Counted from the stretch's first letter, positions 6,952-62,330 are shown. The stretch: DNA of 64,000 nt from Octopus bimaculoides (GCF_001194135.2 NC_068991.1:22502723-22566722); one strand, 5' to 3'. Notes: generated by a model not told the origin, from the sequence alone. A program made the numbers and translations.

Positions 6952-9900
6952 TGTCTTTTTTTCCTCATTTTCTTTTTCCTAGAGAAGCTCTAAGCACTTT
7001 TTCCTTGTCTCTAAATATAGAAATATTGTTGTTTAGTGAGCTGCATCTTAATTTTTTCCTCCTTTTCCTCTTTTCTTCTTTCAAACCAAATAATACAGTT
7101 AAAAATAGTATTTGTATTTTATTGTTTTGCTTTCATCCATCTGTTAAAATGTATTAACAAGCCAATGAAAAACAACCTAACATGGTCATGAGGTCTGCCA
7201 GAAGCAGCAGCCAAATCTTTCTCAATCACAAAAGGATAATGCAGTTTTCTATTATTCTAAGATGGCAAAAAACAAAACAAAAAAACAAAACCAGAAAAAG
7301 GTCTGAACTAGAAAACTTTTGGTTATAGATCAAATAAGGCACAAAACAAGATGCTTGTAAGCCAACAAACGAATGTCCTTATCATTGCTTTATTGTCACT
7401 TTTCCTTCCATGCTCACATGGGTCAAACAGAATGAAGCACATTTTCTACAGTTGCCAACCCTCACCTGTCTCCAAATAAGGTGATGTTTTCCTACGACCA
7501 GACATGTTTACAACTATCACACAGTCAATATCAAGGCAAGGAAACTAGTTCACAAGCACACACACACACACACATACACACACTCATATGATGGAGCTTC
7601 TTTCAGTTTCCATCTACCAAATCTACTCACAAGTCTTTGGTAAGCCTGAGGCTATAGTTGAAGCTACTCGCTCAAGGTGCAATGCAGTGGGACTGAACCC
7701 AGGACCATATAGTCAGGAAGCAAACTTACCACACACCTTCAGCTGTGCCTCTATGTCTGCTTGGTTGTTTGCTCTGCCTGAAATAGTTGCCATAATCTCT
7801 CTCAAATTGCACCTTGCCACCTACAGAAATGAAGTTATCTTCAAGGTGTGTAATGCTTGAAAAGAAAAGAGATGGCATTATCAAGGTTGGGAAGCCTCTG
7901 ATACGAGGTCTGTTCTATCTAGGCTGACATAGAGCTAAACAGCAACTACAACAACAATGTGTGGATGGGTGACAAAAGCTGTTTATCAAGTAACTGATAT
8001 CCTGGATACATTAACCTCTACAACTGTTGTCAAGGGCAGTGTGGCTTATAAAGACATCACAGCTTGAAATAGTGATGGACAGATATAGATTCTCTTGCTG
8101 TTCAATTCTTTCTTGTTGCAGTTTGAACAGCTTCCATTGTGCTTTGTGAATGTGTGTGCATGTGTGTGTGTGTTGTCTACATTGAGTGTAGATGTAAATG
8201 TGGGTGAGTAAATGTTTGTGTGTGTGGACATGGGCTGCATGTGTATGTAAGTGCATGGATATGTATATGGATGCATTATATGTGGTTGTGTATGAGTGTA
8301 TGTCAATATGTGGTTGTGGATGTCATGCATGTGTATATGTGGGTGCACATATATATATGCAGATGCGATAAAAGGTTATCATACTGACAGAACATTGGTG
8401 ATGGTATATGAAGCAATATGGCATTTATAATACAGATTGAGTGAACAAACAATTTGTAGCTTTTTATAATCAAATCTACCACTGGTCACTTTATTCTACA
8501 TGCCCCAGTTTAGCTTAGTGCTGAAAATAAGTATCAGATTACCAATAAATCTTGTCTGCAATAGATTTGGTCTTCCTTTCTAGTTGGAAATGTATCCCAC
8601 TTCATGCTGTGAAACACAAGCTAAGTGCGAAGACTTCCAGAATTTAGACTTCCACATTTTTATTGATATATGCATTCTCTGAATGTAGATTTTTATTGAT
8701 ATATACTCTCTGAAATTCATATATGTGCTCACTCTCATATGTGAGTGTGCGCACACACACATACACTGTCTTATAGACGTACACCTATGATTATTGCTTA
8801 TTGAGGTACAAGTATTGTTGCAAAGGAGGAGTATAGACAACCAAATCAACTTTAATAACACACAAAACAAGACTAATAATTATGTAAAAGCAACTGTAGA
8901 TGTTTATGGACGTTTCTTACTATGAGTCTGTCGTTGTATCCCAAGCAGTTTGACTTACTAGAATTGTGTCTTCTGCCTTCTCCAGGTAAGCAAGAGCCCT
9001 ATGGTTTTTAGGGCTAGAGGAAAGCAACATGTAGAACTAGGGAGAGATTGAGATGCTTGAACCTTTACTTTGAGTATTTATCTGTTTAAAGTAAAATAGC
9101 TACAAACAGAAACCAAAACCTTTTAACTCCATGTGCATATGAAAAAAAACCTCTATGCATTCACTTGACCAGCTAGAAGCAACAGTCAAATCTCTCTTCA
9201 AATCACACCTTACCACCTTCAAAAAAGCAAAAATGTTGGATAATACAATCATAAATACACTATGCCTTGGAGTAATACAAGATGGTCACAGTTCAAATGT
9301 CTGTTAGATCAGTGAAACCTCTCTGCAGTTGCCTAGACTAGTTAGCACAGTCTGAGCTCAGAATCTCTGCTCAAATCACTCTCTGCTGTCTTACAAAAAT
9401 AAATAAAACAAAACAAAAGTTATATTTCTATATTTTGGAGTTATAATCCCTTCTTCAGGACATTTGGAAAAGTGAGGGATGGAAAAGTAGTTGCTTAAAT
9501 ATATAAATAACTAAAATACAAGGTATGCTGTATTCCTAGGTAGTCACAGACTAAAAAAAAATTATGATCATGTGTTTGATATGTTTTGGTCACAGCTCTG
9601 CTTGATCAAGTCTGACAAGGGCTAAGCAATAATTTTTAGCTACACACACACACACCACACACACACACATACGCACACATACACCTACGCACATTTGCAT
9701 GCATTATATACGGGTAGTGACGAGGATATTTTAAAAATATAATGTTTGACTTAGGGTGGGGGTGGAGAAAGGGGCACAAAATTCTTTTCATACTTTTGTT
9801 TTACATTTTTTTGCCAAAATTTTAAATTTACATTTCTTTCCTCTATTTTCACTCCCAATTTAAATAGTTATCTGATGCTTAGTATATTTTGATATACTAC

Positions 9901-31864: not shown

Positions 31865-34182
31865 CTGAGAGAGAGAATAGTGCAGTAAGTTTATAACAAT
31901 GTGGTGTGTATATTGCAGTGCACAGATGTGGAATGTGTTGCAGTGCAGCGAGTGTATAGCAGTGTAATATAAGATGTGGAATATATAATAGCTATGTATT
32001 GACTATGTAAAGATGTGAAATATGCAGTGGATGTTATATAGTATTGTTGTGAATGTATAACAATGTGTTGACAGGGCAGAGGTTTAGAAAATAAAGTAGT
32101 CACTGTGGAGAGATGTTGAATATTAGTGTGATGTGTGCACATGTGCATGTATGTGAGAATATTGTGGTAAGTGATTTGGTGTAGAATTTATGGTAGTGAT
32201 GTAGTGACTGTGCAGAGATGTGGAAGAATATATGTCAAGTGGACTGCATGGAGCTGTAAGATGTACCTGGCAACAATTCTACTTAGGTTGATGGCAGTAT
32301 GTATACTCTGTGCATGAGGAGAGAGAGAGATTATCAGTTACAAGTGAACATAAAAGTGTAATACTGAAATATGGGGGATTTTGATACCATTGAAAACATT
32401 GGATCTGTGTTGTTCCAACAGCTGGCACCAACGATCTTATTTAGTTATCCTCCACCCTGTCCTTCTATCTTTCTCTCTGGCTAATCACCTATTCTGTTCC
32501 ATTTCTCCTCTTTTCAGTCTGTGTCTCATCTCTCCTTTATCCATTCATCTTTTCACATTCTCTCCCTCTGTATCTTCTCCTTGCTCTACCTTTCCCTTCA
32601 TTAATCTTCCCACTGTTCTTCCCCTTTCACCAAGCATCTCTCCCATCCTCCTCCTTCTCTTCCCCATCTTCATCCTCGTTCACTCACATCATTAATATTC
32701 TTCCAAAAGAAAGACTGACTTACAACAAGATATCAGGCTATGCCATTGATATTTGCCTTAGGCCAGGACAGCTATCTGTTGTCATTATTCCAACAATAAC
32801 AGACATTCTGTCCCAGATGTATCTCATAAAAATACAACGTCAAATGATTTGATTATTTTAATATCAACACACTAAATACATGGAGTTGATGGCCAACAGG
32901 GATTTACAGAGATGGGAAGCGGGGAATTAGGGGGAGAGATTTTGTTGTTGCTGTTTAGTCCTAGGTTAACTCCGGTCAAACAGAAGATGTTCTAGCCATG
33001 ACCATCATGTCATTTCTTTCTTTAACAGATATAGTGTGTCTATTTCTACATAGAAACTCTTGTATTAATTAGACATTTTGCTGTATAACCTCATAGATGG
33101 AAAGCTTTTACTCATAGATTTCAAGCAGAACAGATATGGCCATCCTACCTTTTTTCAAGTATTGTAGCTAGGACTGTACTATTCAATGTCCTTTTTTTTT
33201 TGTTTTTTGAGATATTATTATTTGAGGGAGATAGGCTTCTATTACTAGCAGGTTGACTGACCACAGTGTTTTCTTTTCTATCTCCCTTACTCAGTTTTTT
33301 TTCCCTCTTTCTATCTTCCCTTTCATTACCAGTCTTCATTATTCCTCATCTCTCTTTTTTCTTTGTTTTTGATATCACATTCTTTGCTTGTCTGCCCCTC
33401 TCTCTCTCTCTCTTCCTTTTGTTCTTTTTTCTCTCTCTTTTATTCACTCTCTTCTTTTTGTCTCTTTCTCTTCCTCCTTCCGTCTCTCTCTCTCCCTCTC
33501 ATTTCCCTTTTGTGCTTCCTGCCTTTTCTTGTTATTGACTTTTGTTGACTCTCTCTGTCCCCATCACTTCTATCTCTTTTCTCTGTCTTTCTTAAACTTC
33601 TCCCCATTTTTACTTTACTCCTGTCTCTCTTTAACCCACACCCCTCTTCCGTTTTTTTGACAGAACCAATAATTTATCAGTGTAATCTTTGGAAATATTC
33701 CAGCAGATCAATAATTTGTCCTTGATGATTGGTTTTTATTTTTGTACTGTCGCTCTCTAACAATCATCTTGTTTCCTAACGTTGCATTTCTTTTTATCTT
33801 TCTATATTTAAATACCACTGGCACACATGCTTGCACACATACATTCACAGGTCTTATCCAGTTATACATATGTATGCACAGATATGCTTCTATTCTACAT
33901 CAGTTTTTATGCATACAACATTGTGTCCCAACAACTGTTTCCATCAATTCCTCCAAACACTTGGATTTCTACACTATTGCATCTAACTACCCTAGCTCTT
34001 ATTCCTCTCTGCCTCTTTCTTCTCCAGCTCTGTCCCAACTACCAGAAAATAAATAACAATATTTACTTAGATTTTACTCCTTTGGGGGACTGTTATTTAG
34101 TTTGAAGACAACCTTGTTTGAGCAGACTTATGATCAAAAGCATTCTGTTTTCTGGGTGGTTTTCTAGATATTGAATCTAATG

Positions 34183-34500
34183 CATCATTGTCATTTAACA
34201 TCCGCTTTCCATGCTAGCATGGGTTGGACAATTTGACTGAGGACTGGCTCCAATCTGATTTGGCAGTTTCTACAGCTGGATGCCCTTCCTAACGCCAACC
34301 ACTCCGAGAGTGTAGTGGGTGCTTTTACGTGCCACCCGCACGAAGGCCAGTCAGGCGGTACTGGCAATGGCCACGCTCAAAATGGTGTATTTTATGTGCC
34401 ACCCGCACAAGAGCCAGTCCAGGGGCACTGGCAACGATCTCGCTCGAAAGTCCTTACACATGCCGCGGGCACAAGTGCCAGAAAGGCGATGCTGGGCATT
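34183..34500 (-). mobile_element. RTE-clade LINE 3' UTR fragment with internal tandem units
   Basis: Near-identical to 59993-60193. On the - strand it ends ..ccatgctagcatggaaagcggatgttaaatga, with repeated gccagt..ggcactggcaacgat units. Confidence 0.8.
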
Positions 34501-36782
34501 CCTCTTTTTTTGTTTTTGTAAAAAGATGGTTGTGAAGCAAGGAGATTTGGGTACTATTTCTAGCAGATAAGTGATCACGTAAAGGTTCTCTTGTTGGTTC
34601 TAATGGGTAGATGGCTAGTGTTTTGATGCATTTTCAATGTAACCAAGACTTTGGAAAGCTTTCTGTTAAAAAGAAGTAATAAAGCTGTAATTTTATATAT
34701 TGATACATTATTGTGTTGATGTTGACCAACTGAAATATCATGATGTCATTCAGATTTGATTGAAGTTTTAATTTAAATATGAAGGCTTTGATGTGAGGAG
34801 TAATTATTTAATACCAACTTGCCCAAGCCCATCAACATTAAAGTATAAGCATAGTTTGTGTATTGTTGTTTTGTCTTGAAACTGGCCTGATTGAGAAGAC
34901 ATATGGTCAAAGCAGTCTGTGTTCATCCCATCCCAACAAATATAGTATCTCTAAGATTTTTTATCTGATATGTCCTCTTTTTTCTTCCTTTTCTCTTTTC
35001 TCTTTTTGTAAGACAATAGTATAATATGAGGGAAATTCAACTGCTATTTCTTGCAGGTTGCGCGTTCATGTAAAGGCTCTCTCTTTATCTTGCACACTAC
35101 CTGTCATGTTGCTACTGCTGCTGTTGTTATTGGAGATTTGACTGCTACATCAGCAAGCCAAGCAATCACCAAGACAACTCATTTGGCATTATTTATTAAA
35201 AATACACTGATTGTTGACGAAGAACATTGATATACTAATGTATGCTCAGTCTTCAGTGAATACAAAATGAAGAATAAATAGCAGTTGACACAGAAGCTGT
35301 GTGTATCCATTTATCTGACAGTTTGCAGAAACATAACTTTTTTTTTAAACGCTTTAATGAAAGGAAGGACAGGGACAAAAATTCAATCCGGATCTCTGAG
35401 AAGGATGAAGAAGGATCAAATCACAGCTGGTTTGTTACTAACCACTGCATTGATCCTTATAAGAAACTCAACTGAACGTCAGTAGTTGCAAATAGGGCAG
35501 CCTCTCAAAATGTTTGATACAGGGTCACACTTCTGTCATGTCTGGTAATGGATCTCCGCTTGAAATGCACTTCTGTCCCATTTGACAAAAAAATGTGGTT
35601 GGAAGCGGTACAACATTGATTTAATCTCAGAATGTATTATCATGAATGCGTCTATGAGCCAATCAGTGGTCTTAAATTGGGAAACAAAACAGACCTGTTT
35701 TGTTTTCTAATTAGTGTTATAGCAAGTTGCACTATGGGGAGCGGGGAATTGGCTGGTCAGTGCTGGAGCACCAGGCTGCTTAATCAGCCCTGACCTAGAG
35801 TTTAACAACAACAACAAAGAAATAGTGAAAATCAGAAATGATCTTAGCATTTGAGGAATGCATTAAATTTTTTTTTAATCACAGTCTTCCCTAACTCTGC
35901 AACTATATGTGTAACTACTCTGAATACAGATAAATACATCAATAAAATACAAATGAACCTATACATTGTCATTTTGCATACTGGAAATAGTAGCCAAATA
36001 CTCTCTAAATCATACTACTTTCTTAAAAGGAGACATGCAGTGTTGTAGTTTTGGATGCACCCTGCCTAAGAAAATAGACATCATCTAGAGCATTACTACA
36101 ATATTGATTTAAGTTCATTGTCTCCATCTAATTCACCCAGACACACAAATGTTATGTATATGCCTGAACTACAAATGCATTATTTTCCTCTTCAGAACCA
36201 AAGGTTTGCTGTCTATCTCTAAACAATCTCAAAAGAATCTTATCTATTCTATATAAACAGAATTCACTTTGCTCGTTCAACTCTCTTGTAATCACCATTT
36301 TCAACCTTCAGGTGCACTAAAAGTAAACAAATTGATTGTGAACAGCCACAAATTGTTACCAGTGCATCACATATGAAACATACTTAGCTTGCTACATTGT
36401 GCTCTGCACCACATACCCTTGTTGCTCAATTGCACCTCATAAAATCTAGACAGAAGAATGTTGTCTAAGTGGCTGATCTTTTCATTTCTACCTTTCAATT
36501 CTGAATATAATTAGAGAGGCCAAATTTAATCATTTAATTCTAGACAGACTTCCTTACAAAGTTAACTGGTTGAGTTGGTTGATACTTTTCAGTTGTACTG
36601 TCTTCTTTATAGTTTGGCAAGAAGCAACTCCCAGTTTTAGGTGGCAAACCATCAACTCCTGTTAGAAAAGCTTGCGGGTAATTATCAATATATTTGACAG
36701 GTATGTCAGATAAACAAATCCAAATACCCAATCTTTGTCAATATAAACAGACTTGCTGCTGATGATATAATAATAATTTCAA

Positions 36783-38369: not shown

Positions 38370-38518
38370 AGCCACATGGTTCTGGTTTCAGTCCCACTGT
38401 GTGCACCTTGGGCAAGTGTCTTCTACTATAGCCTCAGGCCAACCAAAGCCTTGTGAGTGGATTTGGTAGGTGGAAACTGAGGAATTCTGTTGTTTATATA
38501 TATATATATATGTATGTA

Positions 38519-38567
<49 letters not shown>

Positions 38568-38780
38568 ATATGTTTGTGTGTCTGTGTTTGTCTCTCCACC
38601 ATCGCTTGACAACCGACGTTGGTGTGTTTACGTTCTTGTAACCTAGCAGTTCAGCAAAAGAGATCGATAGAATAAGTACTAGGCTTACAAAGAATAAGTC
38701 CTTGGTTCAATTTCTTTGACTAAAGGCAGTGCTCCAGCATAGCCACAGTCAAAAGACTGAAACAAATAAAAGAATAAAAG
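38370..38780 (+). mobile_element. family A CORE-like SINE with internal (TA)(TG)n
   Basis: ccacatggttctggtttcagtcccactgtgtgcaccttgggcaagtgtcttctactatagcc...gctccagcatagccacagtcaaaagactgaaac. Confidence 0.85.
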
Positions 38781-39796: not shown

Positions 39797-40648
39797 ACAT
39801 CNNNNNNNNNNNNNNNNNNNNNNNNNNNNNNNNNNNNNNNNNNNNNNNNNNNNNNNNNNNNNNNNNNNNNNNNNNNNNNNNNNNNNNNNNNNNNNNNNNN
39901 NNNNNNNNNNNNNNNNNNNNNNNNNNNNNNNNNNNNNNNNNNNNNNNNNNNNNNNNNNNNNNNNNNNNNNNNNNNNNNNNNNNNNNNNNNNNNNNNNNNN
40001 NNNNNNNNNNNNNNNNNNNNNNNNNNNNNNNNNNNNNNNNNNNNNNNNNNNNNNNNNNNNNNNNNNNNNNNNNNNNNNNNNNNNNNNNNNNNNNNNNNNN
40101 NNNNNNNNNNNNNNNNNNNNNNNNNNNNNNNNNNNNNNNNNNNNNNNNNNNNNNNNNNNNNNNNNNNNNNNNNNNNNNNNNNNNNNNNNNNNNNNNNNNN
40201 NNNNNNNNNNNNNNNNNNNNNNNNNNNNNNNNNNNNNNNNNNNNNNNNNNNNNNNNNNNNNNNNNNNNNNNNNNNNNNNNNNNNNNNNNNNNNNNNNNNN
40301 NNNNNNNNNNNNNNNNNNNNNNNNNNNNNNNNNNNNNNNNNNNNNNNNNNNNNNNNNNNNNNNNNNNNNNNNNNNNNNNNNNNNNNNNNNNNNNNNNNNN
40401 NNNACGAAAACGGCCACGCTCGAAATGGTGTCTTTTATGTGCCACCCGCACAAGCCAGTCCAGGGGCACTGGCAACGATCTCGCTCGAAAATCCTACAGG
40501 AGCCAGTCAGGCGGTACTGGCAACGGCCACGCTCAAAATGGTGCATCTCATGTGCCACCCGCACAAGAACCAGTCCAGGGGCACTGGCAACGATCTTACT
40601 TGGCTTGCCGGGTCTTCTCACGCACAGCCCATTTTCTATAGGGGTTGG
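39797..40648 (-). mobile_element. RTE-clade LINE 3' end (ORF C-terminus WAVREKTRQAK* plus tandem 3' UTR) spanning gap 39802-40403
   Basis: Reverse complement of 40600-40645 reads tgg gct gtg cgt gag aag acc cgg caa gcc aag taa, followed by the same tandem units as at 34183-34500. Confidence 0.75.
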
Positions 40649-43966: not shown

Positions 43967-45153
43967 TCTTATTGACGCTTGTGTAGCTGTGTGTGTTGGC
44001 ATGTGTATGAGTGTGTAATTTTCCCCATTTTCAGGGGATGTGGGACTTAAAAACACTCTTTATTTTCCTTTAATCCATATTCAGTTGAAGATCTGATCCT
44101 ATAGCAATCTAATTCCTTCAGCAACTCTCACCTTTTCAAAGAAAGATGCTGCTTCATACTTACACTTATTAACATTAGCACCATCATTTGTCCATCTTAG
44201 TCCATTGAATGACATCCAGTTAGATATCAAAGATCTGCAGGACTGTATCACCTAAACACTGTTTTTTTAAAATTTCTTAGCAGAGAAAAGGGCAGTGTCC
44301 ATGACTCTTTCTAAGGTATCCAATACAGGTAGAAAGCAAGTTGATGATATTCTCAGACCAGAGAGTTTCTCTGATTGCTTGAAATTGAATTCCACTAAAA
44401 GCATCCAAGGAACAGAGGGTAATGTTAAACCAACTGATAGATTAAGTTTACACCAGCCACATAGGTGATGGTAGGATTTGAATTCAGTCCCTAAATAATC
44501 CAATGCTCTAATGGTTTTCCCTATTGCCTGTTTCTTGTTAACAGCACTGCCCTAGTGGCAGATTAGTAAACTAATGACAGCATATTCAAAATGTGCCAAA
44601 CCATGGAGTACCAGATTTAAGAGGTGCAAAATGTTATTATAGTATAATGTAGAAGTAAATATAACAATATGTAAAGTAGTATTCTGTATATCTTACTTAA
44701 CATGGATATAGTTTAGAAAGCTACAAAACTGTGGTATTCATTTTGAGGAAGCATCTTGTATAGTACTAAAAAGCACAAAATCATATTAGTAGCTACTGAT
44801 ATGCTTCTGTGGTTATTAGCACTATATGAAATTCTTTTTTGGGATGAATACCACTACTTTGTGGCTTTCTATATTATATCCATGTCAAGATATATAGAGT
44901 TATATTTTGAATTAATACTGCTTCCATTGCTAATAATAAAATATGTGTGTTTTTAATGTGTAGAATGACCCTACTATGTTGCACGTGTGTGTTTTTGTGA
45001 AATACATTTAGAGGCATTCCCACATCTAAGGCAACATTTAATTTTTTTTAATCTTCAAATTTCTGCCAATGTGATGGGGGGAAAAAAGAATAAACATCAT
45101 ACCTCTGCACAAAAGTATATTAAGTACATATAAAACCAAAAACATACATGCTG

Positions 45154-45179
<26 letters not shown>

Positions 45180-45184
<5 letters not shown>

Positions 45185-45560
45185 AATCTCTGAATGAGAT
45201 ATAAACAGTAGCTGTACGACAATGTGAAGTATATTTGCCACTTAAATGCTGCTAACCACTAGGGGTGAATACTACTGTAGCTTGTAGCCCCAGGAGAACA
45301 TCTCCTCCAGCTGGCTATTGACACACTTTCTGTGCCCTATCAGTATTTGCAAAGGGAAGTCATCCTTCTCATCGTCGACCTGACGTGATATGCACGGACC
45401 CGGGTTTCTGGGTATTTACCCTTCATCAGCGCACGACTGTCACCGATCTTCGATGCAAAGGGGTCCCAATGCAAATACATATATCCTTTTTCCAGTGACG
45501 AAAATTCACTGATCTCGAAAAAGTGTAAACAAGCAATAATAAATCTCTGAACGAGATATA
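45180..45560 (-). mobile_element. retrozyme/Penelope-terminal-like element: 357-nt unit with 24-bp terminal direct repeat and a hammerhead fold
   Basis: taataaatctctgaa(t/c)gagatata at 45180-45203 and 45537-45560, CpG-rich interior, hammerhead at 45392-45434, (TA)n at its 3' end. Confidence 0.65.
45392..45434 (-). ncRNA. minimal type I hammerhead ribozyme fold
   Basis: - strand: GUGCG-CUGAUGA-A-GGGU-AAAU-ACCC-A-GAAA-CCCGGG-UC-CGUGC. Palindromic helix III ACCCGGGU, GUC triplet, helix I 5 bp with two G.U pairs. Confidence 0.7.
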
Positions 45561-47348
45561 TTTTTATATATGTCTGTATGTGTGTGTGTGAATATACATA
45601 AGTGTGGCTATGTGGTAAGAAGTTTGCTTCCCAACCACATGATTCAGTCTCATCGCATGGCACCTTGGGCAAGTGTATTCAATATATAACCTCAGGCTGA
45701 CCAAAGACTTGTGAGCAGATTTAGTGAAAGAAAATTGAAAAAAACTCGTAAACTCCTATGTGTGTGTGTTAGTGTCTCCTTGTCTTAAAATTGTGTGGTA
45801 ATTGTAAATGAGTATCACTGTCATGCAAGCAGTGTCATTAATTCTCAATATTCTGTGAGAACACATCTGGCCATAGGGAAATTATCACCTTGCTTGGAAC
45901 CAGTTACAGGTTGGTGACAGGAAGGGCATGCAGCCATAGAAAATCTGCCTCAGTATAACTCATGCAGGCTTGAAAAAGTGGATGTTAAACAACAATGATT
46001 GCGCATGCACACACACACAAGCATGTCTACTCAGAAAATGTGTAACCAAGTCTCTGTTTTTCTTGCTAAACTTTTGACGCTCACTTTTTCTTAGAGTAAC
46101 CACTAAACAACCTCTTCTGTTCAGATTTCTAGATTCAGTGTCGTCTCTTGTCTGTAGTTTCATATACTTGAAAATGCTTCATTAATTAATAGTGATAATG
46201 TTGCTTTTAACTTGATTAGCTAATTGTGATGTCTTCTACCATATGAAGATAGGTCCTATTCAATGGAAATTCTCCATTGTTAAGAATTTTCTCCAGACAT
46301 AGACATTTTAGTGTTATTATAGTTGTTGTTCTTGTTAGTGTTTGGACTGTCTTCACATGTCTTATTGCTGCTTATATTGCTGTGTGTGTGTCATGTATAT
46401 GTGTGAGTATATATGTGAGTATATGTGTGAGTATAATGTATTTATTTGTGTATATGTATAAATACAGTATAAATATTTGCACATTTGGCATGTGTGTTAT
46501 ATTTGTGTGTCTGTGTGTGTGGAAGTATATATACATACTCATATGCATATACAGACACATGTATGTGCACATGCACACACAGGCACACGGAAACAAGCTT
46601 GGCTAAGTGTTGAAGAAGTTCACGTTGCAATCAATCACATAGCCCTAGATTTGAACCCCTTATATTGATATATGGGGCAAGGCTTTTGTTTTTTTTTACC
46701 ACGGCATCTGATCAGTCTGGGCTTTGAGAATGAACTTGAGTAGAGGGGGTAATTGAAAGCCTAACAGAACAATCGTACCTGTGATTCAAAGGACCAGTCT
46801 TGTTACACTCAGTATTGCCCCGATTCTGCCTGAGAATTCCATTCTGGATATGTCTTGTGTCTATGGAGTACTCAACCATTAACAGTATCATTTATTGGGT
46901 AGGTAGTTTAGTGGACTGAGTTCTTGAAATACCCATCATTGAAACTGACAGGTATCCAATTAATTTACACACTCATGTACATGTGCCTTTATATGCATAT
47001 ATGTTTGTATGTGTCTGCATATATGTCTTTTATGGTGTGTATGTACATAATGTATCAATATTTGTGTTCTAGTGTATGTGTGTGTCTGTATGTATGCATA
47101 TGTATATAATATATGCATTTGTGTGTGTGTGAAATTATATACTCTCCAGCTTGAGTGATTTTTGCTTCTTGTCTCCTAGATACAGATTTTTGTTTTGTTT
47201 GTTTTTTAATTTTCTTTTAAGAAAGTTTGACTTTTTTTATTATTGTTTCTTGATTGAAAATGTCTTGGAGTTTTTCTCTTTTAGACATTATCTGAAAGTT
47301 GCCTAGTAACAACCTTAGTTCTTTGCATTCTTCTACCTTTTAGTCTTT

Positions 47349-50855: not shown

Positions 50856-51074
50856 TTAAGGTACAACTTGGACTTTTAGTGAGTCTTGTTAAGTCTACCA
50901 AAGGATTATGTTAAGGCTGAAAATATGAGGAATACTGAGCCACTTAGATTATAATTCAAAGAGAAGTAGTTCTGATGATCAAATAACTGAAATATCATTA
51001 AAATTAATAGAGAATGTGTTATTTCATTCAGTTATCTAGATGTACGTACTACAAAGTATAAATAGACGTACACA

Positions 51075-51434
51075 ATCATAGTTGTGGCCAATGCCAGCGC
51101 CACCTGATTGGCACTTGTGCCGGTGGCATGTAAAGAGCACCATTCGAGCATGGCTGATGTCATTACCACCTGACTGGCACCCGTGCAGGTGGCACATAAA
51201 AAGCACCATTTGAGCATGGTTGATGCCAGTGCCACCTAACTGGCCCCCATGCTGGTAGCACGTAAAAAGCACCCACTACACTCTCGGAGTTGTTGGCGCT
51301 AGGAAGGGCATCCAGCTGTAGAAATCTTGCCAGATCAGATTGGAGCCTGGTGCAGCCTCCTGGCTTGCTACTCCTCAGTCAAACCGTCCAACCTATGCCA
51401 GCATGGAAAGTGGACATTAAACGATGATGATGAT
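51075..51434 (+). mobile_element. RTE-clade LINE 3' UTR fragment
   Basis: ggtggcacataaaaagcacc tandem units, then cacccactacactctcggagt..ccatgccagcatggaaagtggacattaaacgatgatgatg. Confidence 0.85.
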
Positions 51435-52321
51435 ATACAAATTTGTACTGAAGGGAAATCAGCTATTTCAAGTTTTCCCTTCACTGAAAATGAAGAAAAA
51501 CATTTTTTTAGCCGACATAGGTGAGGTTTTTGTCATTCAAAAACAATAAACAAGAATTTTATTCATTATTTATTTATTTGATTTCTGTCAGTTAAAGGGA
51601 TAACTCCAGAACATTAGTTTTCTCTTCCCGCAGCATACAAACTTATCCAAATTCACTACTAATGTTGCATTGGTTTCTACAAGTTGCCTTGAATTTTAAT
51701 TTTATACATACACAATTGATCAAGCATAGGTGTGTGGTTAAGAAGCATGCTTCCCAACCACATAGTTTGGAGTTCAGTCCTGTTGCACAGCACCTTGTGG
51801 ACAAGTATCTTGTATTATAACCCCCAGGCCAATCAAGGCCTTGTAAATGGATTTGGTAGATGGAAACTGAAAGAAGCCTCCCTGTGTGTTTCCCTGTTTT
51901 GACATTGCCCAATAGTTGTAAATAAGTGTCACTATTGTCCAAATGTTATCACTCATTTCCACTCTTCTACGAAAAATGTCAGGTCATAGGGAAAACATTA
52001 CTTTGTTTTGGAAGCAGGTAAATGTTGGCAGCAGGAAAGGCATCCTGCTATGCAAAATCTGCTTCAATGAATTCCATGTGAACCATGCAAGTATGGAAAA
52101 GTGAAAGTTAAAATGATGCTGATGACACACATAAATATCTGTGTAAAACAGCATGTTAAAAAATAGCCTAACATAAGTTGAAAGAAGTTCAACTACAATT
52201 TTTAAAGGTCACAGTGGAACTTGAAAAACAGATGTGAATACATCCTGTTATTCTCTTTGTTGAGAGAAAAATGGTGAAGATTGTCCTGACATGTTTCACC
52301 CTTTGTCAGAAAACTAAATCT

Positions 52322-59992: not shown

Positions 59993-60937
59993 TCATCATC
60001 ATCATCATCATCATCATCATCGTTTAACGTCCGCTTTCCATGCTAGCATGGGTTGGACGATTTGACTGAGGACTGGTGAAACCGGATGGCAACACCAGGC
60101 TCCAGTCTAATTTGGCAGAGTTTCTACAGCCGGATGCCCTTCCTAACGCCAACCACTCAGAGAGTGTAGTGGGTGCTTTTACGTGTCACCCGCNNNNNNN
60201 NNNNNNNNNNNNNNNNNNNNNNNNNNNNNNNNNNNNNNNNNNNNNNNNNNNNNNNNNNNNNNNNNNNNNNNNNNNNNNNNNNNNNNNNNNNNNNNNNNNN
60301 NNNNNNNNNNNNNNNNNNNNNNNNNNNNNNNNNNNNNNNNNNNNNNNNNNNNNNNNNNNNNNNNNNNNNNNNNNNNNNNNNNNNNNNNNNNNNNNNNNNN
60401 NNNNNNNNNNNNNNNNNNNNNNNNNNNNNNNNNNNNNNNNNNNNNNNNNNNNNNNNNNNNNNNNNNNNNNNNNNNNNNNNNNNNNNNNNNNNNNNNNNNN
60501 NNNNNNNNNNNNNNNNNNNNNNNNNNNNNNNNNNNNNNNNNNNNNNNNNNNNNNNNNNNNNNNNNNNNNNNNNNNNNNNNNNNNNNNNNNNNNNNNNNNN
60601 NNNNNNNNNNNNNNNNNNNNNNNNNNNNNNNNNNNNNNNNNNNNNNNNNNNNNNNNNNNNNCTGATGCTTCTAATGTTTCAGCTTTTCTCTCAAGATACT
60701 TACACTCTGACGGGTATTCACATTGACATTACACATCCAACGGAGCATACTGGCTTCATTCCTTGCAAGCTTATGTATGTCCTCAGCAGTTACAGCCCAT
60801 GTTTCACTGCCATGTAGCATGGCTGTTCGTACGCATGCGTCATACAGTCTGCCTTTTACTCTGAGTGAGAGTCCCTTTGTTGCCAGCAGGGGTAAGAGCT
60901 CTCTAAACTTTGCCCAGGCTATTCTAGCAGCTACACT
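59993..60937 (-). mobile_element. 5'-truncated RTE-clade LINE (RT C-terminal region plus 3' UTR) spanning gap 60194-60661
   Basis: - strand 60937-60670 translates SVAARIAWAKFRELLPLLATKGLSLRVKGRLYDACVRTAMLHGSETWAVTAEDIHKLARNEASMLRWMCNV, a typical RTE post-RT domain. (GAT)n tail at 59993-60020. Confidence 0.88.
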
Positions 60938-61034: not shown

Positions 61035-61792
61035 ATGACACATTTCACTCTGCCAGAAATTTGGAAACACCATGCTCTACTGCTTGGCATTTGCACTGGA
61101 AGCTTCAGTACAAACAGATGGTGAACACACAGTACAACTGTTGGCTTGGTGTGCCCCTAAAGCATGTACTGAGAGTGATAAAAATCAAACATCCAGTCAA
61201 CATCATGATGTTTTGAGTGATCACTAGTGATGGCAACGTTATCCCTCCAGTCATCTTTCCACAAGTCATCAGACTCAACATGGTGGCCTACATCAAGTGT
61301 CTGGAAGAGGTAGTGCTGTCTTGGATCAAGACGGTGGCTGCTAGAAGACCCTATGTCTGGCAACAGGATTCTGCACCATGTCACACATGCAGGAGAACCC
61401 AATCATGGCTGTCAGACAATTTTTGTGACCACATCACCCCCTAACATCTGGCCACCTAACTCCCCAGACTGCAACCCCCTTGGTTATTATGTATGGGGCA
61501 CAGTTGAGCGAGAGCCCCCAACAGAACTCCTTGTAACACCAAAGATGAACTGAAGGCAAGGATTTTGGCTGCATTCACTAACTTAAACAAGGAGACCATC
61601 CAAGAGAATTGCAGGAGATTCCAAAGTCATCTGGAGGCCGTAGTTGAAACCAATGGCAATTTTATTGAATAAATTTACTCTTTAGTATTTCAAGATATTT
61701 TAATGTAATTCTGGTAAATATATCTGTTAAAATGAGATGTCAGTGTTATTTTCATTTTTGCGTAATTTAGAAAACAGTTTATTCACCGCACC

Positions 61793-61795
<3 letters not shown>
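61035..61795 (+). mobile_element. internally deleted, frameshifted maT/DD37D mariner-like transposon with intact 3' TIR
   Basis: Catalytic region ..ITSDGNVIPP..WQQDSAPCH-(37-residue spacing)-SPDCNPLG(D)YY..NGNFIE* (stop 61670-61672). TIR ..ttattcaccgcaccctg|TA at 61795. Confidence 0.88.
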
Positions 61796-61849
<54 letters not shown>

Positions 61850-61852
<3 letters not shown>

Positions 61853-62117
61853 CTATATTTAAGAGATGAGGAATTATGTACATTATTTATATTATTTACA
61901 TTTGATGGATATTTGTCCTCATCTTGTTTGTTGTTAACACAATGTTTCGGCTGATATATCCTCCAGCCTTCATCAGGTGTCATGAGGAAATTTTGAACTT
62001 GGGTTCTCGTTCCTAAGGTATTTTTCGATGTTATTATTATTATTCAGGTCACTGCCTGGAACCGAACTCGGAATCTTTGGGTTAGTAGCCTGCACTCTTA
62101 ACCATTATGCCATATGC
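61850..62117 (-). mobile_element. tRNA-headed SINE whose 3' half carries a hammerhead fold; (TA)n tail at 61796-61849
   Basis: A-box TGGCATAATGG (62112-62102), B-box-like GTTCGGTTCC (62067-62058), (TAA)n linker, then the hammerhead. Confidence 0.75.
61936..61981 (-). ncRNA. minimal type I hammerhead ribozyme fold (helix III mismatch in this copy)
   Basis: - strand: GACAC-CUGAUGA-A-GGCUG-gaggauauau-CAGCC-GAAA-CAUU-GUGUU. Confidence 0.7.
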
Positions 62118-62330
62118 TCTCCTCATCCATACACAGCACATGACCATATCAACACAGATGTCTGTCTTGTACACCACATCTGATACTTCTTATGTCCAAC
62201 ATTTCTCTAAGGGTGCTTACACTGTCATGTATGCACACTGACATTGCACATCCAGTGGATCATATTCGCTTCATTTCTTTCAAGTCTACACATGTCCTCA
62301 ACAGTCATGGCCCATGTTTCACTGCATATA
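62118..62330 (-). mobile_element. degenerate RTE LINE RT C-terminal fragment
   Basis: - strand reads SETWAMTVEDMCRLERNEANMIHWMCNVSVHT, homologous to 60700-60830. Confidence 0.8.

Follow-up and report, generated by a model that had tools for sequence, protein, structure and literature searches.

A probable hammerhead retrozyme copy with a 357-nt unit, next to a (TA)12 tract in Octopus bimaculoides

Layout, composition and surroundings of the 357-nt unit

The stretch of Octopus bimaculoides DNA analysed here, called the window, is 64,000 nucleotides long. On its minus strand a short direct repeat (R, 45560–45536) is followed by 332 nt of unique sequence, a second R (45203–45179) and a (TA)12 microsatellite (45178–45155). 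The RNA sense of the element is this minus strand. The features of the locus are as follows.

45536–45560, minus strand: upstream copy of R, reading TATATCTCGTTCAGAGATTTATTAT (from repeat search and sequence).
45204–45535, minus strand: unique body of 332 nt, which together with one R makes 357 nt; CpG-rich and non-coding, with a strongly self-paired RNA.
45385–45444, minus strand: extension of helix I by an asymmetric internal loop CAGUC/AUA and a distal stem GUGA/UCAC (from the minimum free energy (MFE) structure).
45392–45434, minus strand: type-I hammerhead motif (from descriptor, chance rate, custom model and fold energy).
45398–45405, minus strand: self-complementary helix III segment ACCCGGGU, predicted to be able to form an 8-bp intermolecular duplex.
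45396/45397, minus strand: predicted site of self-cleavage, following C17 of GUC (derived by numbering the sequence as a hammerhead).
45179–45203, minus strand: downstream copy of R, with CG changed to CA on this strand (from repeat search and sequence).
45155–45178, no strand assigned: (TA)12 microsatellite adjoining the downstream R, presumed AT-rich insertion target (from the sequence; PMC8557442, PMC11167929).

The two R copies (45179–45203 and 45536–45560) are 25 nt long, are identical at 24 of the 25 positions and have a start-to-start spacing of 357 nt, and the locus comprises 1.07 units of 357 nt. The sole mismatch between them is CG versus CA on the minus strand, that is, a CpG transition. 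The original prediction had proposed a terminal repeat of 24 nt; the 357-nt spacing and the single CpG mismatch stand, and the length is corrected to 25 nt. The R-unique-R-(TA)n order that it described for the minus strand can be read directly from the sequence. R is AT-rich at both ends, and its middle part, CTCGTTCAGAGATT, is not microsatellite-like and contains one CpG. The upstream R holds a 5-bp hairpin (AUCUC/GAGAU), which is a local hairpin in the MFE fold. The upstream flank is AT-rich and reads ATATATAAAAA, and the downstream flank is the (TA)12 tract. Apart from the R pair, the 64-kb window contains no direct repeat of 20 nt or longer at a spacing of 150–1000 nt, microsatellites excluded.

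The composition of the unit differs strongly from that of the window. The unit contains 13 CpG, whereas 357 nt of the window hold 2.3 on average, and its CpG observed/expected ratio is 0.81, against 0.22 for the window; the GC contents are 44% and 34.7%, respectively. At least 13 CpG were found in only 7 of 1146 sliding windows, and 4 of these 7 are the unit itself. Because of this CpG excess and because the R mismatch falls at a CpG, the insertion appears to be recent. The kept CpG and the CpG transition between the R copies indicate that the copy is young, in agreement with the earlier claim of a CpG-rich interior. Other CpG-dense spots, with up to 15 CpG per 357 nt, lie at 34100–34650, 40430–40605 and 51040–51380. 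They consist of a repeat with units of about 60–67 nt (TTTTAYGTGCCACCCGCACAAG..CCAGTC..GGCACTGGCAAC...), and this family is apparently young or unmethylated.

The minus-strand RNA of the unit is predicted to be highly structured. Its MFE is -112.3 kcal/mol (z = -3.35), and none of 100 shuffled sequences was equally stable. The plus-strand RNA is less stable (z = -1.86). In a circular fold of the unit RNA 63% of the nucleotides are paired, and the MFE structure places the ribozyme at the end of a long arm. A six-frame pseudo-protein of the unit gave no relatives at E<=1 among 5.8 billion predicted proteins. ARAGORN found no tRNA-like head in the unit, and the repeat search gave no long terminal repeats, only the 25-nt R. 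The element is most likely a non-coding, non-autonomous small retroelement.

The original prediction had proposed a BLASTN search for tandem arrays, and no array or second copy was found within the 64-kb window: blastn at word size 7 matched only (TA)n, and so did nhmmer on the masked window. The unit also showed no similarity to the SINE, LINE or mariner repeats of the window. Two contigs carrying homologues of the window's transposase and reverse transcriptase (RT) remnants contained no copy of the unit; these contigs belong to other genomes, which have no SINE in common with the window and a different CpG depletion. Among the window ORFs no Penelope-like RT or GIY-YIG domain was found, 64 kb being a small sample.

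The window as a whole is CpG-depleted, microsatellite-rich and full of interspersed repeats. A tRNA-derived SINE, with head GTGGCTATGTGGTAAGAAGTTTGCTTCCCAACCACATG and body GGCACCTTGGGCAAGTGT, is present in many copies and was recognised solely by recurring translated motifs; it presumably resembles a common, abundant octopus SINE. One copy (about 45597–45800, plus strand) abuts the element with only a (TG/TA)-rich stretch between them, and others lie near 7550–7860, 23720–24460, 26500–26800, 38390–38710 and 51640–51990. Decayed remnants of two Tc1/mariner-type (DDE_3-like) transposases, both belonging to one family, are located at 19751–20182 (minus strand) and 61217–61792 (plus strand). Their homologues are found in arthropods and in Octopus vulgaris and carry PF13358, and one of them is named tcb2 transposase. 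C-terminal tails of LINE RTs (...RLYDACVRTAMLHGSETWAV...MLRWMCNV...) occur at 60674–60937 and about 62120–62300, both on the minus strand. The best named relatives of these tails are two Octopus bimaculoides uncharacterised proteins (70% and 88% identity), and ORFs beside a homologue of the LINE tail match RVT_1. Since Pfam called no family at E<=0.01 on ten ORFs of the window, the transposase and RT readings rest on these homologues. An inverted repeat of 104 nt without spacer (44689–44896, 75% complementary) lies within AT-rich DNA about 260 nt from the element, and a compound (TA/TG/CA)n microsatellite of nearly 1 kb spans 16950–17900. Runs of N occur at 2756, 17587, 23792, 27337, 39802, 41617, 47902, 52535 and 60194, most of them inside simple repeats.

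The hammerhead motif

The motif reads GUGCG-CUGAUGA-A-GGGU(AAAU)ACCC-A-GAAA-CCCGGG-UC on the minus strand and is followed by CGUGC. Its parts are located at 45434–45430 (GUGCG), 45429–45423 (CUGAUGA), 45408–45405 (GAAA), 45399–45397 (GUC) and 45396–45392 (CGUGC). Helix I is formed by GUGCG/CGUGC and has 5 bp, of which two are G-U. Helix II has 4 bp (GGGU/ACCC) with the loop AAAU, and helix III consists of an A-U and a C-G pair closing the palindromic loop CCGG. Loops close helices II and III, and helix I is open, which gives the type I layout. The string is exactly the one given in the original prediction, including the predicted cut between 45397 and 45396.

Helix II is flanked on both sides by an additional A (45422 and 45409). 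The pair G10.1-C11.1 therefore does not directly adjoin A9 and G12, one A being inserted on each side. The A before GAAA (45409) had been pointed out earlier as the extra residue; it is there, but it is accompanied by the A at 45422. By analogy with known ribozymes, the A after CUGAUGA probably corresponds to the nucleotide that Penelope-associated hammerheads typically leave unpaired between positions 9 and 10.1. Its counterpart between C11.1 and G12 is out of the ordinary: the literature on retrozyme and Penelope-like element (PLE) hammerheads that was compared does not describe it, and it may inactivate the ribozyme. If the two A residues are taken together, helix II has an A.A mismatch at its base, comparable with the U.U in HHR_Amex2, and with such a mismatch a dimer is predicted to be more active than a monomer, whose activity would be poor. 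Both residues probably belong to the family and not to this copy alone, since private changes at the helix II base are unlikely in a copy so young.

The chance rate of the motif was estimated with a descriptor that comprises the core and the three helices and allows one unpaired base at either end of helix II. Applied to both strands of the 64-kb window, it gave a single match, which is this motif. At the observed stringency there was no match in 300 dinucleotide shuffles and one match in 120 Mb of first-order Markov sequence, or about 0.001 per window. The probability that a random motif falls inside the R-bounded unit is about 0.006, giving a joint chance of about 7e-6 per window. In a single window this is significant, yet dozens of such motifs would be expected by chance in a genome of several Gb. 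In a metagenome scan, the pattern CTGATGA-N14-GAAACCCGGGTC matched 11 loci on GC-rich prokaryote-like contigs, which are chance matches. In these controls helix II has at most 2 bp and helix I at most 1 bp, compared with 4 bp and 5 bp here.

Covariance models gave a mixed answer to the check that had been proposed. With Rfam release 15 no hammerhead family reached the gathering score on the window, and none was called at E<=10 on the 551 nt or the 76 nt around the motif; the Rfam runs covered the window and these two stretches of it. A custom covariance model, R1, was built from coral, mussel Mg353 and axolotl Ax353 hammerheads (PMC7229834 supplement), all of them cleavage-validated; the motif under study and Ax330 were left out of it. 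With filters off, the motif was the top match of R1 in the window (14.4 bits, E ~0.08). On control DNA, the model gave up to 12.8 bits for unrelated background and 8.5–11.8 bits for matches to a core lacking helices. Because 14.4 bits barely exceeds the 12.8-bit background, this evidence is marginal: R1 ranks the motif first, Rfam is silent, and the score stays near background. The case is thus carried by the descriptor statistics together with the genomic context, with marginal model support.

The energy of the hammerhead fold is -4.0 kcal/mol here, compared with -5.7, -4.3 and -9.9 kcal/mol in the three validated ribozymes. In none of the four is the hammerhead fold the nearest-neighbour MFE structure. 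The ACCCGGGU homoduplex reaches -14.9 kcal/mol, against -10.3 to -13.4 kcal/mol in the validated retrozymes, and is the strongest of the four. In the MFE structure of a two-strand cofold, the helix III duplex ACCCGGGU and both helix II hairpins form.

A second hammerhead-like core is located at 61936–61976 on the minus strand and reads CUGAUGA-A-GGCUGG(8-nt loop)UCAGCC-GAAA-C-AUUGU-GUU. Its helix II has 6 bp and its A9 is followed by an unpaired A, as in PLE hammerheads, but helix I does not pair; the core is the second-best match of R1 (10 bits, E ~1.8). In its context (61790–62300), it lies downstream of a frame resembling a LINE RT tail and of a tRNA-like stretch (62030–62110), and a long (TA)n tract (61796–61862) lies about 75 nt downstream of it. 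This core could be a chance match or a decayed PLE-type min-hammerhead.

Relation to known hammerhead elements and alternative explanations

Hammerhead satellites have been known since 1987, and satellite 2 of newts and salamanders (~330 bp) and Sm-alpha of Schistosoma are the classical type-I hammerhead repeats. The element shares with them a unit of about 330–350 nt with one type-I hammerhead, whose weak, palindromic-loop helix III would call for dimers if cleavage is to be efficient. In contrast, satellite 2 and Sm-alpha are very high-copy tandem or SINE-like repeats in which G10.1-C11.1 is canonical and the loop1-loop2 contacts are conserved; Rfam Hammerhead_1 recognises them but not the motif here.

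The closest likeness is to the metazoan non-LTR retrozymes, which were described in 2020 by Cervera & de la Pena (PMC7229834). These animal elements are 170–400 nt long, have GC below 50%, are without LTR, PBS and PPT, and give highly self-paired circRNAs; in the mussel Mytilus galloprovincialis the repeats are 350–390 bp, e.g. Mg353 (PMC7229834). The unit of 357 nt lies inside this published size range, as had been proposed. The canonical metazoan type-I hammerhead has a helix I of about 6 bp, a helix II of 4 bp and a helix III of 1–2 bp with a palindromic loop of 2–4 nt, and such ribozymes are poor as monomers and good as dimers (PMC4209133). The core of Mg353 contains GAAA-CGCGCG-UC, and that of Ax353 reads CUGAUGA-U-GCC..GGC-U-GAAA-CACGUG-UA with a U.U at the helix II base (PMC7229834). 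As a monomer, Ax353 (HHR_Amex2, of the axolotl retrozyme Rtz_353) reaches 22% cleavage in one hour, and it is far better as a dimer (PMC7229834). The element resembles Mg353 and Ax353 in its type-I core (CUGAUGA/GAAAC/GUC), the non-coding unit, GC below 50% and the self-paired RNA. A 6-nt palindrome stands between A15.1 and U16.1 in all three (CGCGCG in mussel, CACGUG in axolotl, CCCGGG here), and the helix II base is non-Watson-Crick in Amex2 (U.U) and here (A.A). The palindromic helix III had been described in the original prediction as suited to dimeric cleavage, which agrees with these cleavage-validated animal retrozymes.

There are also differences. Outside the core the unit has no homology to the retrozymes published from coral, mussel and axolotl, it carries an extra residue 3' of helix II, and its helix I has 5 bp with two G-U pairs; published units are reported to be species-specific (PMC7229834). 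Mussel and axolotl retrozymes have dispersed monomeric copies beside arrays, a form that the copy here resembles; what differs is that 1.07 units and no array are found in the 64 kb. Cleavage and circRNAs have been shown for the mussel and axolotl elements, while the element here is known from its sequence.

Penelope-like elements prefer microsatellites, with (TA)n among the targets, and form partial tandems, often with a short extension at one end (PMC8557442). A Penelope-like RNP nicks AT-rich DNA in vitro and starts reverse transcription inside the template (PMC11167929). Animal retrozymes are regarded as non-autonomous derivatives of Penelope pseudo-LTRs, and dispersed monomers are common among them (bioRxiv 10.64898/2026.07.22.740005). 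The locus shows the signature of a Penelope-type insertion, with an AT-rich or (TA)n target and a partial tandem with short terminal repeats. The TA-rich ends of R, which meet TA-rich flanks next to (TA)12, fit such an insertion. The palindromic 15.2–16.2 and loop 3 are shared with the hammerheads of Penelope pseudo-LTRs, implying dimeric action. Compared with PLE min-hammerheads, helix II has 4 bp instead of 6–8 bp, and a helix III stem-loop is present. An autonomous PLE has RT and GIY-YIG coding capacity and a period of about 3 kb, whereas the unit has no such ORF and a period of 357 nt, which excludes a truncated autonomous Penelope-like element. An autonomous PLE or its pseudo-LTR was rejected for this period and for the lack of an RT/GIY-YIG ORF with relatives. 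Plant LTR retrozymes (Cervera et al. 2016, PMC4918200) are likewise non-autonomous and spread via hammerhead-processed circular RNAs. However, they have type-III hammerheads in LTRs of about 350 bp, with PBS, PPT and 4-bp TSDs, as well as circles of 600–1000 nt and Gypsy-type mobilisation (PMC4918200), all of which are absent here, and a plant-type LTR retrozyme was rejected on structure. A tRNA-derived SINE was rejected because ARAGORN found no tRNA-like head and the unit does not match the SINE copies of the window.

The locus is therefore read as a young monomeric copy of a metazoan non-LTR hammerhead retrozyme, mobilised by a Penelope-like element (probability about 0.7). According to the mechanism proposed for it, tandem master copies elsewhere in the genome would be transcribed into multimers, in which pairs of ribozymes would join through the 8-bp ACCCGGGU duplex into active dimeric hammerheads and cut after GUC. 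Dimer cleavage would free 357-nt monomers, and the host tRNA ligase would circularise them. A Penelope-like RT/GIY-YIG protein would nick AT-rich DNA at the (TA)n tract, and the RT would go once round a circular (or multimeric) 357-nt template and 25 nt beyond, leaving R-unit-R. This product would be a miniature of the partial tandems (pseudo-LTRs) of Penelope-like elements.

The structure of the repeats allows two other histories. R may be a 25-bp target-site duplication made when a 332-nt hammerhead-bearing monomer was inserted, rather than the overlap left by 1.07 turns of a 357-nt circle. The AT-rich ends of R and the AT-rich flanks on both sides agree with this, as do the target-site duplications of animal retrozymes, which are longer than 4 bp when present (PMC7229834), and the 30–40-bp extensions that Penelope-like insertions can bear at one end (PMC8557442). 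However, partial tandems are the normal Penelope-type product (PMC8557442, PMC11167929), and the middle of R, CTCGTTCAGAGATT, is non-repetitive and holds a CpG; because the CpG observed/expected ratio is so much higher in the unit than in the window, an origin of R from the element is by our own estimate about four times likelier. A target-site duplication is thus a serious but unlikely explanation. The other history is that the true locus is a tandem array of 357-nt units, which a short-read draft assembly merged into one unit plus the overlap. The nine N runs of the window mark the assembly as a gapped draft, in which tandem structures may be under-represented; PLE-type tandems trouble short-read assemblies (PMC8557442), and retrozymes are typically tandem. 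Against a collapse, the R copies differ at one base and join unique flanks without gaps on both sides, and the dispersed monomers noted above are common for retrozymes (bioRxiv 10.64898/2026.07.22.740005), which makes it very unlikely.

The remaining doubts concern the ribozyme itself. An unrelated short transposon or SINE-like insert (357 or 332 nt) with a 25-bp target-site duplication could carry a fortuitous hammerhead without catalysis. This would agree with the silence of Rfam, the marginal score of the custom model, the two extra A residues beside helix II and a window crowded with interspersed repeats, and at about 0.001 motifs per 64 kb dozens are expected in a genome of a few Gb. But the one short unit of the window that is bounded by R contains the motif (the joint chance of ~7e-6), the size, GC, z of -3.35, non-coding nature, (TA)n tract and palindromic helix III are independent hallmarks of retrozymes, and the insert has neither a tRNA-like head nor similarity to the SINE, LINE and mariner repeats around it. 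Such a coincidence has little probability. It is easier to accept, but still rather improbable, that the element is a true retrozyme relic with a dead ribozyme, in which the extra A between C11.1 and G12 and/or that after A9 is a private, core-disrupting mutation. The low model scores are consistent with this, and hammerheads show strong conservation of a G10.1-C11.1 immediately next to G12 (PMC4209133). In contrast, an unpaired nucleotide after A9 is normal in PLE hammerheads (PMC4209133), HHR_Amex2 tolerates a mismatch at the base of helix II (the 22% monomer cleavage in 1 h), and a copy so young would hardly be expected to have gained a private insertion at precisely this position.

Standing of the locus and implications

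As a retrozyme copy, the locus carries one ribozyme. Its transcript would therefore be cut once at most and would release neither a 357-nt RNA nor a circRNA, and a dimeric ribozyme could not form in cis. The insertion appears to be a dead-end daughter, a product and not a source, and any circRNA would stem from master arrays elsewhere.

A further, tentative proposal, more doubtful than the reading of the locus itself, is that the copy belongs to an undescribed cephalopod family with active tandem masters. In such a family the A on both sides of helix II would be natural, either as an A.A at 10.1/11.1 or as a 9a bulge with an insertion between 11.1 and 12. Cleavage would occur only in dimers through the exceptionally strong ACCCGGGU, and 357-nt circRNAs would be abundant in tissues of the octopus. 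Remnants of Naiad, a PLE, have been reported in cephalopods (PMC8557442), and no report of a hammerhead retrozyme in cephalopods was found in the searchable literature.

Since the class, the ribozyme architecture, the dimeric action and the link to Penelope have all been published, the locus opens no new question. It illustrates Penelope-type insertion, with an AT-rich microsatellite as target and a copy of one turn plus 25 nt. If confirmed, the motif would be a natural hammerhead with a residue between C11.1 and G12 and, as a dimer, a probe of how much the core tolerates. Confirmation would also let cephalopods join the animals that carry hammerhead retrozymes, and a cephalopod family, if true, would mean that ribozyme-made circRNAs also occur in cephalopods and that the hammerhead core tolerates a further variant.
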